Part shown: piece after piece, positions 53,427-56,400 of the stretch
Layout: each line of letters begins with the position of its first letter
How positions within the stretch are numbered: the first letter of the stretch is position 1
Assembly: GCA_907165135.1 (NCBI GenBank)
Contig: OU015567.1
Span: forward strand, 9,300,001-9,364,000
DNA: 64,000 nucleotides
Reading direction: 5' to 3'
DNA from: Oikopleura dioica
Taxonomy: Eukaryota > Animalia > Chordata
The notes under the pieces: generated by a model
The model's input: only the letters and a program-made list of their open reading frames with translations
Told to the model about the DNA's origin: nothing
Database searches by the model: none
Made by a program: the position numbers and the translations under genes

Positions 53427-56400
53427 ATGAGGTCCAAATTTTATATATTCACGTTATGCGGCCTTGCAGGCGTTTATACACAGGTTGAGTTCCAAATAGA
53501 AAACAAAATTATCAGTAGTTTATTTCTGAAACCAAAAAACTGAACTCTGAAAAAGTCAACAAATGTCAATCCGCCTGGGATGTGCGCAGGCTACATCAAC
53601 AAATACACACATTCTGACCAATGTGTCTACAGTTTTACCGTCCCGAAGCGGGATGTCAACGATTGCAAAGGGCTAGAAGACACTGTAAATAATATGAACG
53701 AAAGAACAAACGCCCTGGAGTTGGAAGTTGCCGAATTAAAGAAAATCATCGAAATTATCAAAGACAACATGGATGCAAATCGAATGATCGGACAAATGCA
53801 GCAGCAACAGGCCACGTGGGAAGAAAATGACAGGATTATCAGAGAGGAGAACGCGATGAAATCAGCGCAGCTTACTGAAATGGAAATTAATTTACGAGAA
53901 GTCCAAAATAACCTCGAACGCGCGAATGCTGATCTAGCTGCATTGAAATCAGAAGCGACTCCGCTCGAGGAGGAACTTCTCAAGTCCAGATCGCAAACTC
54001 AACAATTCCGAAACGAGCTTGTTATTATGACGCAAAAGTACACCGACCAACTCAGTTTGGTGGACGAAATGATGAGTGCGAAGAACTGTTCGGAAATCAA
54101 CAAGAATTTGCCCTCGTGCGATGCGATTCGACTCTGGGGCTTCAAAAAGTCAGGCTACATGATGATCGATCCTGACGGAGAAGATGGTAATCCCCCCTTT
54201 CAAGTTTACTGTGACATGGACAGCATCCCCGGCAGAGGAATCACCCACGTGCATCATTCCAACCAAGGAATCGGCGTGGATGTTCAAGGGTGCGAAGAAG
54301 CCGGATGCTTTTCCCACGAGCTCAATTACCAAGGAGTCTCTATGTCGCAAATGGAATCGCTTATTGATATCCACACTGCTTGCGAACAATCGCTCAGATA
54401 CGACTGTCTCGATTCCAAGGTACAAAATCAAGTTAAATGCTACATGTAGTTACATAGTTTAATTCAAGATTATGCGAGACAGAACCGCTTGGTGGGTATC
54501 CCGCGATGGACGGCGGCAGAACTCTTGGGGAGGGGCACCCATCGGCTCAGGCAAATGCGCTTGTGGCCTAACGAACACCTGCGTTGACCCTAATTACGTG
54601 AGTGATTCTTAATTTTTATTGCTTTATATCAATTTTGTTAGTATTGTAACTGCGACGCTGACGACGAAAAGTGGCACAATGATGAGGGTCTTATTTATGA
54701 AAAGGATCTCCTTCCGGTAAAATTTTTTTAGAGTTTTAACTTGACTAAATTTCGGAATTCAGATAAAGGAAGTGCGTTATGGTGACGTTACTACTGATAA
54801 AGGCGAGAAGGGCAAATCGCTCGTTGGCGCGCTTGTCTGCAAGTGGGATAAAACGATGGCAGTCACATCGTGTCAAGCACTAGCGAGAGATGGTGTTAGG
54901 GAATCTGGACATTACATGATTGATCCTGGTAAGTGTTGACTAATCAGTACTAATTCGCAAAAAGAGAGTTCGAAATTGGGGGCGGATAGCGTAGTTAGTC
55001 GTGCGTACGCAATCTCTGGTGAATCTCGCGGGCGTGAGTTCGAATCCTTCTGACGAGGGGATTCTTTGAACCTAACGCCTACGTTGGCATCGCAGCTAGT
55101 CGGTTTCCCGAGGGTTAACCACAGTTTGTGCGACTATCGAGGACTTGTGTTTCCTCGAACAATTGGTAGATGTAAAGTCAATTCGTCACGAAGAGCCAAT
55201 GCGTTCCCGGCGCATGAGCTCCCAGAGTACACAATTAACCTTGTCACCAAAAAGAACTCCAAAATGACGAAAGGCTGCACGAGCCCTGAGGTTTCTCCCT
55301 GCCCCTAGTCGGCTTCGAGACGTCGAAGTTAGATCACCAGATTGGGAGTTTTTGTAAAACTTGTATCGTCAATTTCTCGAGACGCAAAAAAATCCCTGCC
55401 TCTTCCCTGTTTTCAGTAAATTTTTCTTTGAACAGAATCTAGAAAGATAATATTTCCAGAAAAGAAGGCGCATCCGTGGGAGCGGATAGCGTAGTTAGTC
55501 GTGCGTACGCTGTCTCTGGTGAATCTCGCGGGCGCGAGTTCGAATCCTTCTTCCGAGGGGATTCTTCTCTTCGCCCACGGTGGCATCGCACCTCGCGAAC
55601 GGGTGGTGGTTGGGTTGCCTACATAAAATGTAGGCATTGACAGGACTTGTGTAGGGAGGAGTGTCCATTGGTTGATGTAAAGACAATCCTTCACGAAGAG
55701 CCAAAGGACCACTCCTGCACAAAGTACCGAGTCTCGCGGATAACCTTGTCACCAAAAGAACCCTAAATTGACGAAAGGCTGCGCGGGCCCTGAGGTTCCT
55801 CTCTGCTCCTAGTCGGCATCGTGTCCTCGATGTTAGATCACCAGAATGAGAGTTTTTTCGATTTACGATTATCAAACTAAGCCTTTGCTTCAGATGGACC
55901 ACATGGAGTAGAACCGCCACAAAAAGTATTCTGTGACTTCTCAAATGGAATCATGCCCATCGACGATTCCGTTGATCCAACTACCGTCGTTGAAGGTGGT
56001 GGACTTCTTCCTCGTAAGTAAAAATCAAAAATTCGTTGACTCGAATGCCAAACTAAGCAAGTTTAATTTTAAGCTGATTACTTGACAACGCACTGACATA
56101 TCAAATTTTGCCATTATGCTTGATTTTGAAATGCGCTCAAGTTTATTTGATTCATCTCATAAGAATCAGTTTTTATTTCTATACATTCAAAATATTTTTA
56201 GCTGCGCCTGTGCCAAGCAATGTTGGTCCTCGCCGTACTTGGGAATTCAACGATTGCGGAGCCAGTGGTCGCTTTGGACCCACTGAATCAATGTGCAAAA
56301 CGGTTTATGACGAGGACTATCCCGGTTTCTTCGTCAAGAGTGGCATGCAATTCTTCTACGCGCCAAAAACGGGGAGATACAGAATTACTGCGACCGCACC

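Follow-up and report, generated by a model that had tools for sequence, protein, structure and literature searches.

A family of tRNA-headed, structured RNA genes of RNA polymerase III type, present as a tandem pair in an intron of Oikopleura dioica

We analysed a stretch of 64,000 nucleotides (nt) from the chordate Oikopleura dioica (assembly GCA_907165135.1, contig OU015567.1, positions 9,300,001 to 9,364,000 of the forward strand), in the following referred to as the window, in which a single host-gene intron contains two members of a new family of structured RNA genes of RNA polymerase III (Pol III) type. The intron extends over 965 nt on the plus strand (54929-55893, bounded by GT at 54929-30 and AG at 55892-93), most of which is filled by unit 1 (54978-55353, 376 nt) and unit 2 (55478-55858, 381 nt), two complete genes of this type on the same strand. 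By BLAST, the units are 75% identical over 376 nt, and their heads, which resemble transfer RNA (tRNA), are 93% identical. Unit 1 is closed by a run of five T (55349-55353) and unit 2 by a run of six (55853-55858). An earlier note, made from the letters of this DNA before any search, had described the pair in the same terms, with ~375-nt units, nearly identical heads and T5/T6 ends, and its coordinates proved accurate. Both units contain internal A and B boxes (TAGCGTAGTTAG and GAGTTCGAATCC), located at 54987-54998 and 55036-55047 in unit 1 and at 55487-98 and 55536-47 in unit 2; the A box of unit 1 was assigned by its match to the consensus. A TATA-like box of A and T lies upstream of unit 1, at -30 to -25 (54948-54953, plus strand), and its counterpart for unit 2 (55448-55453) occupies the last part of the spacer that separates the two units (55354-55477).

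None of the models of known RNAs recognizes the units. At gathering scores, Rfam 15 has no match in the window, and at E-values up to 10 over 54900-55900 it still returns nothing, the models for small nucleolar RNAs (snoRNAs) and self-cleaving ribozymes (hammerhead, HDV-like, twister, pistol, hatchet) included. Applied to 20 loci of the family described below, it gives no family match and recognizes only genuine neighbouring tRNAs (RF00005), never a family head. The Rfam comparison that the earlier note had proposed as a check thus yielded no confident match to a known family. Likewise, ARAGORN finds 0 tRNA genes in the window.

The units have numerous relatives. A BLAST search of the same genome with unit 1 gave seven more loci, which share about 50 nt of the 3' part and carry a similar tRNA-like head 150-250 nt upstream; a search with the head alone recovered only the two units, this query being too insensitive. 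Eleven copies were found in the genome with a 28-nt motif, the core being invariant or nearly so in them, and three covariance models of the 3' domain, built in succession, yielded 15, 22 and 24 matches, with the growth ending at about 25; these model-based counts are lower bounds, as the best 150 candidates were scored per search. The family hence comprises at least about 25 copies at 22 loci, which are distributed over all five large contigs and are in some cases intronic. Single units are found at 19 of the 22 loci, and the headed copies are 237-492 nt long. Nearly all copies are distinct and most are strongly diverged, without near-identical bursts. In the motif and covariance-model searches of the genome, the 3' domain had no match outside the family.

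The 28-nt motif also occurs in three marine metagenome contigs and has no match in viral contigs. Between the metagenome contigs and this genome, the coding flank is 73% identical and the 3' domain of the RNA 86%, so the family also exists in a diverged Oikopleura lineage and has been conserved better than coding DNA. The locus orthologous to the metagenome copy has no unit in this genome, which is uninformative because the genome order is known to be scrambled. Two sequences from the environment, L024 (Ga0209092_10058476) and L025 (Ga0115008_10081503), have an upstream tRNA-Arg(CCG) gene and spacer in common and represent the same family member. Their scaffolds are identical and their bodies differ by large insertions and deletions; the GATGTAAAG..CACGAAGAG core of the unit 1 body, for example, is present in L025 and missing from L024. 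This comparison suggests that the body evolves fast while the scaffold is held.

Some relatives depart from the common layout. L035 (G000:C5:1193879-1194169) and L040/L044 (G000:C3:2051441-2051730) are segmental duplicates, each with two headless units in tandem, about 135 nt in length, in which all core helices are kept and the B box is missing; a T4 run is absent from the second unit in both pairs, and other short tandem repeats (GAGAGCGAAGAAAGGGGTGGCTCATCCC...) lie upstream of the pairs. The paralog L003/L039 (G000:C1:15342978-15344008, minus strand) is split between D arm and strand A by an element of 612 nt, whose terminal inverted repeats (CAGGGTGTCTAAATTGG...) and 8-bp duplication (CGCTATAT) identify it as a miniature inverted-repeat transposable element (MITE) of the hAT type. 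The tRNA-headed loci L026 and L027, which lie on the contig of the window (C5), are not members of the family. L026 (G000:C5:10501743 region, minus strand), in the head of which ARAGORN calls a tRNA-Ala, and L043:651-741 are Pol III-looking units with similar ends, formed by an A run, AAACT../..GAGTTT, a stem and then a T run, and without the GA/GA module described below. They hint that there may be a wider superfamily of tRNA-headed RNAs.

The gene anatomy is shared by the family. In the 19 headed copies, each position from -30 to -25 is A or T in 16-19 cases, with the neighbouring positions unbiased, and TC directly precedes the G-rich start; a genuine tRNA-Lys gene beside one paralog has the same kind of A/T box. 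The headed paralogs keep both internal boxes, and a run of four to nine T follows directly after the last helix in 22 of 24 copies. The T stem around the B box, which the earlier note had rightly recognized as broken in both heads when it judged them not to be working tRNAs, is not conserved in the family, and the B box therefore persists as promoter and not as RNA structure. Target-site duplications are absent from 19 of 20 copies, in which the longest word shared by the flanks is within the shuffled range; L052 is the sole copy with a flanking direct repeat, of 10 nt. As far as these flanks tell, an upstream box that is not transcribed, yet kept at almost every copy, is hard to explain by RNA-mediated copying. 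Transcription by Pol III and the exact ends of the RNA are predicted from here on.

The RNA parts follow each other in a constant order. From 5' to 3', a G-rich strand (54978-54983 in unit 1) is followed by the D-arm hairpin with the A box (stem 54989-93/55006-10, D-loop bases 54999-55005), in which paralogs keep shifted or changed pairs, by strand A (55015-55026; 55515-26 in unit 2), and by the B-box region and the variable body (55048-55246). Then come an A run and a short stem of the AAACC/GGTTT type enclosing TGACGA..hairpin..CTGA, which together form a kink-turn-like module (55247-55294; 55752-55798 in unit 2), and the 3' domain (55295-55348). The latter consists of strand B (55295-99; 55799-803), a strand complementary to the 5' end (55301-06), a linker that is often a hairpin (55313-28), strand A' (55331-41; 55835-45) and strand B' (55344-48; 55848-52), directly followed by the T run. 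All of these parts lie on the plus strand.

Within this order, six helices and one predicted loop-loop contact covary across subfamilies. For the nested part, an alignment of 25 sequences that had been fitted to the model has 96.9% of its cells paired, compared with 85.4% in shuffles; 9 of 12 pairs are changed on both sides, none of 500 shuffles reaches the score, and sliding the partners against each other leads to a sharp drop. The B/B' helix, anchored in the search by its two fixed ends only, reaches 5-9 base pairs (bp) in 24 of 24 copies, with more than ten compensatory versions. The acceptor-like helix at the 5' end is found in every copy in at least six versions, including GGGGC/GCCCC in unit 1, GGAGC/GCTCC in unit 2, and GGAGT/ACTCC, GGGGA/TCCCC, GGTGA/TCACC and GTAGGT/ACCTAC elsewhere; between the two units, RNAalifold marks a compensatory change from G-C to A-U. 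The A/A' helix is built from three unrelated sequences: the long subfamily has TCTGGTG/CACCAGA, the headless units have CGTTCAC/GTGAACG, and the short subfamily has purine/pyrimidine tracts. It is this replacement of sequence between subfamilies on which the case for A/A' is based; the duplex energies of cognate and non-cognate strands do not discriminate, because purine-rich heads pair with any pyrimidine-rich loop.

Several of these helices had been seen in the two units before. The pairing of the anticodon-position strand TCTGGTGA with TCACCAGA near the 3' end, which the earlier note had proposed to close the molecule, is exact in both units, extends to AATCT/AGAT and corresponds to helix A/A'. 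Its GGCT..RGCC hairpin and its linker hairpin (CTTCGA/TCGAAG at 55313-28, CATCG/CGATG at 55817-32) were confirmed, as was the long body hairpin around the GATGTAAAG..CACGAAGAG core, in which nine pairs are changed on both sides between the units. Three further proposals, the TGTCA/TGACG and AACCT/AGGTT helices and a GGGTT/AAC(T/C)C pseudoknot, are not kept in the wider family, and their bases belong instead to the kink-turn-like module.

This module (in unit 1, canonical stem 55254-58/55290-94, GA at 55266-67 and 55288-89, hairpin 55273-85) has GA on both strands in nearly all copies, and its canonical and hairpin-capped flanking stems both covary. In four copies (L056, L057, L069, L071), a bulge of exactly 3 nt is followed by GA and a continuous non-canonical stem, which on paper is the textbook layout of a kink-turn, while the other copies, both window units among them, have an A-rich bulge of 6-7 nt. 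The tandem GA on both strands, with a canonical stem on one side and a non-canonical, hairpin-capped stem on the other, is the arrangement of known kink-turns such as the C/D core of box C/D snoRNAs and the 5' stem-loop of U4 small nuclear RNA, and the TGACGA ... CTGA of the units is similar to the C (RUGAUGA) and D (CUGA) boxes. Apart from the longer bulge of most copies, the units differ from these examples in the position after the GA pairs, which is C.U and not U.U. A kink-turn at this position is predicted from sequence. Box C/D snoRNAs themselves were considered and rejected: the near-C and D boxes are 13 nt of hairpin apart, no guide lies beside the D-like box, and no snoRNA model matches.

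The loop of the capping hairpin (55276-55282 in unit 1) is complementary to the D loop. With anchored patterns, at least five complementary bases are found in 23 of 23 copies, and the paired sequences differ between subfamilies: TCGTG(C)/(G)CACGA, GGTGG/CCACC or TCACC, and AGTGGG/CCCACT. When D loops and hairpin loops are combined across subfamilies, 5 bp are reached in only 0.8%. We infer a contact between the two loops, in which the kink-turn hairpin would play the role of the T loop in a tRNA.

The head is therefore more than a promoter, as its 5' end, its D loop and the strand after its D arm all pair with the 3' domain. In our reading of the topology, the three long-range helices all cross one another as pseudoknots, and the core is connected like a four-way junction, that is, like a cloverleaf with its 3' half in swapped order. 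On one side, the 5' strand would lead into the D arm and on into A, and A' into B'; on the other, B would run into the strand that pairs with the 5' end, much as the T stem of a tRNA continues into its acceptor stem. From its position ahead of the kink-turn stem, the A run could pair with the U tail at the 3' end.

The units are present in RNA libraries. Two marine metatranscriptome studies have Logan contigs that match at 95-97% identity and do not extend beyond the units, located at 55029-55207 and 55046-55242 in unit 1 and at 55498-55765 in unit 2; the host exons and the spacer are not covered by any such contig. A further metatranscriptome contig matches the 3' part of the paralog L003, despite its split by the MITE, and a paralog of the L024 type is matched by reads from oligo-dT RNA-seq, in a run that bears the species label.

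Some of the history of the locus can be read from the Bergen genome, in which the ortholog was reached through the first large exon of the host gene, without joining exons, on contig FN656403.1. The host exons align there at 73-77% identity, and the intron at the exact same junction (L060) is 43 nt long, without any unit. The pair is consequently specific to one lineage, having been either inserted in the Okinawa lineage or lost in Bergen, and some form of mobility or loss must have been involved. A weak similarity between the flanks of unit 1 and unit 2 extends as far as a pseudo splice junction in the spacer (55398-55425), where TTTTCAG and the TAAAT after it look like a 3' splice site fused to the decayed remains of a 5' splice site. 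These remnants suggest that almost the whole intron, with one unit and its promoter, was duplicated in tandem. The 9-mer TTCGAAATT directly before unit 1 (window 54968-54977) is also found in the 43-nt Bergen intron (L060:1201-1211), which could mean that part of the ancestral intron survives at the insertion point, or could be due to chance.

The absence from the Bergen intron raises the question of whether the units are mobile elements. They could belong to a low-copy family of tRNA-derived retroposons, similar to short interspersed nuclear elements (SINEs), that inserted into a formerly 43-nt intron. The 3' domain and its pairing with the head would then serve recognition by a reverse transcriptase, and the covariation would reflect selection on master copies for mobility rather than a host function. 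That several kinds of tRNA-like Pol III head are joined to one common 3' module fits this explanation, as do the dispersal over all five large contigs and into introns, the flanking repeat of L052 and the presence of the pair here compared with its absence in Bergen. SINEs have also been reported in oikopleurids, where they make up 0.6% of OdB3 and under 0.1% of the Okinawa assembly (PMC8008620). However, the copies end in their own stem and terminator and not in an A-rich or simple-repeat tail, 19 of 20 have no target-site duplication, and there are only about 25 of them, almost all distinct. The 3' domain is not found in any long interspersed nuclear element (LINE), elements of which the Okinawa assembly is nearly devoid (PMC8008620). 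The A/T box at -30, moreover, lies outside the transcript and would not be carried along by RNA-mediated copying, yet it stands at nearly every locus. Finally, the helices are intact in nearly every single copy and not merely in a subfamily consensus. The evidence from the family supports the earlier note's view that the units are not the product of neutral SINE decay. We regard a selfish, SINE-like origin as unlikely, though it is the main rival, and because there are no target-site duplications and no LINE-type tails, the copies are few and the promoter box is kept, the evidence favours a family of Pol III non-coding RNA genes over an ordinary SINE.

The same features set the units apart from tRNA-derived SINEs in general. 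Both have a tRNA-like head with A and B boxes for Pol III transcription, and in the CORE-, V- and Deu-SINE superfamilies, too, a conserved module recurs in copies with different heads and bodies, and the copies are dispersed, often intronic and present at a locus in one lineage only. In the units, however, the module that is conserved lies at the 3' end and pairs with the head, the copies end in a stem and a T run of their own and not in an A-rich or LINE-derived tail, target-site duplications are absent, the upstream A/T box is kept, and each of the ~25 copies is diverged. A similar use of the promoter is found in RNA genes such as BC1, 4.5SH and vault RNA, or RPR1 and SNR52 of yeast with their A/B-box leaders, which likewise borrow an internal type-2 promoter from tRNA for the expression of another RNA, end in oligo-U and form small gene families. 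Unlike a removable leader or a simple hairpin, however, the head of the units is integral to the fold, and both in size and in intricacy the units far exceed BC1 and vault RNA. Folds that rearrange or mimic a tRNA are known from the permuted tRNA genes of Cyanidioschyzon, two-piece transfer-messenger RNA, bacterial YrlA and viral tRNA-like structures; as the units would, they attain a four-way junction and a contact of the D-loop/T-loop type from a non-standard strand order or from pseudoknots. In the units, the 3' half would be swapped and not circularly permuted, a free acceptor 3' end is lacking, a hairpin presented by a kink-turn would stand in for the T loop, and the host is an animal nuclear genome.

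Of the three identities that the earlier note had offered, a Pol III RNA that co-opted a tRNA promoter is the best fit. Another of its options, a very divergent known RNA, fails for the RNA of the signal recognition particle (SRP), as a canonical gene for it is found elsewhere in the genome (Metazoa_SRP, 194.5 bits) and the units do not match, and survives in a different form, that of a lineage-specific Y RNA or vault RNA whose protein partner would be Ro60-like, with a TROVE domain, or the major vault protein (MVP). Here, the genome itself gives some encouragement: it encodes a TROVE/Ro60-like open reading frame (G000:C2:6034837-6035715) and an MVP-like one with vault repeats (G000:C2:9047002-9047691), and the Rfam models for Y RNA (RF00019) and Vault (RF00006) find nothing in it, a search made without positive control, so that the genome may yet contain such RNAs at other loci. 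Internal A and B boxes are known from vault RNAs as well, a tRNA-like domain is part of YrlA, the Y-like RNA of bacteria, and about 18 Y-like sbRNAs occur in nematodes. Orphan RNA-binding proteins thus exist, yet the units lack the defining features of their usual partners. The copies do not have the bulged, Ro-binding terminal helix formed by the two RNA ends, their 237-492 nt stand against about 100 nt for Y and vault RNAs (about 90-140 nt for the Vault panhandle), and there is not even a weak Rfam match at E-values up to 10. We consider this identity improbable. The remaining option, an element bearing a self-cleaving ribozyme, may be taken together with a miniature retroelement whose long terminal repeats (LTRs) would be the units. 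In favour of such elements are the two direct repeats, which are spaced by about 500 nt and enclose a short internal region, and the complex, pseudoknotted fold. Nothing supports a ribozyme, however, as no ribozyme family matches at E-values up to 10 and the GA/GA core is arranged as in a kink-turn and not as in a hammerhead. As LTRs, the repeats are just 75% alike, each has its own terminator, a flanking duplication is missing, inspection revealed neither TG..CA ends nor a primer-binding site after unit 1, and most loci have a single unit. We deem either of these very improbable. RNase P and MRP RNA are not compatible with a family of 25 copies, telomerase RNA was dismissed for the lack of a conserved template, what looked like a U1-70K loop motif belongs to a stem, and the strands of a hammerhead would be in the wrong order.

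We thus conclude that the two units are real, that they are structured, and that they are members of a new family of RNA genes of Pol III type. This is supported at the level of the family, by about 25 diverged paralogs that have their promoter and terminator anatomy and their covarying helices in common, by the lack of an Rfam match and by the contigs in RNA libraries. Each unit would be an independent small-RNA gene, transcribed by Pol III from its A/T box at about -30 and its internal A and B boxes, with the transcript starting at the G run and stopping at the T run directly after the last helix. The resulting RNA of ~375 nt would fold into the core common to the paralogs, a four-way junction formed by the pairing of the 5' end with the near-3' strand, the D-arm hairpin that holds the A box, the long-range A/A' helix and the terminal stem. 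The terminal stem would stack on the kink-turn-like GA/GA module, whose capping hairpin loop would pair with the D loop as the T loop of a tRNA meets its D loop. The order of the strands would make this a rearranged, or permuted, cloverleaf with helices crossing as pseudoknots, and the B-box region and the body would be a fast-evolving expansion at the position of the anticodon loop. With an L7Ae-family protein on the kink-turn, La on the U tail and a tRNA-binding factor on the tRNA-shaped core, the RNA could form a stable small ribonucleoprotein (RNP). At this locus, one gene would have entered the intron, or been lost from it in the Bergen lineage, before a tandem duplication that included the promoter. 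The most likely role, which we put forward with moderate confidence, is that of a small RNP scaffold with a tRNA-shaped core locked by the kink-turn.

Several observations weigh against this reading. The Bergen intron without a unit is what would be expected of a mobile element, and the L003 copy split by a MITE is likewise a sign of mobility or of dispensability. Two headless copies have no T run, and the metagenome contig L024, whose upstream flank is the same as that of L025, is without half of the body module. The z-scores of the minimum free energies of the two units (-0.96 and -1.95) are unremarkable, so that the structure claim must rest on comparison between sequences; there, the pair counts derive from the fitted alignment, the three pseudoknotted helices and the loop-loop contact were counted by custom scripts and not by R-scape, and the paralogs are related, hence the shuffle tests overstate independence. 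Contigs cannot show the ends, strand or abundance of an RNA, and RNA libraries can contain DNA. What the sequences establish are the anatomy of the genes, their membership in the family, the covariation of the helices and the presence in RNA libraries, whereas Pol III transcription, the exact RNA ends, the kink-turn, the loop-loop contact, the protein partners and the cellular role are inferred.

A bolder interpretation, which we offer tentatively and consider rather doubtful, is that the family represents a new class of animal structured RNA, a pseudoknotted, rearranged cloverleaf in which a hairpin presented by a kink-turn replaces the T loop, and in which about 25 Pol III genes display different bodies. 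Such an RNA could be a tRNA mimic or an RNP platform, for instance a partner of Ro60 or an RNA of the vault, or a regulator of tRNA-handling enzymes.

Large structured RNA families are rarely found in animals, and the fold described here is found in no RNA catalogue. With about 25 paralogs and the copies of other lineages, there is enough natural variation to define a complex pseudoknotted fold from sequence alone. The family is an example of how a tRNA gene can be remodelled: its promoter boxes are retained, its T arm persists solely as a signal in the DNA, and a tRNA-like junction is re-created, with the strands in another order, by a new 3' domain. The family also explains some of the unusually long introns in the Oikopleura genome, where introns are about 50 nt long, and draws attention to Pol III genes of a kind that annotation pipelines will overlook or call SINEs. 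If the units are indeed an RNP scaffold or a tRNA mimic, they could identify the missing RNA partners of conserved proteins in a fast-evolving chordate.

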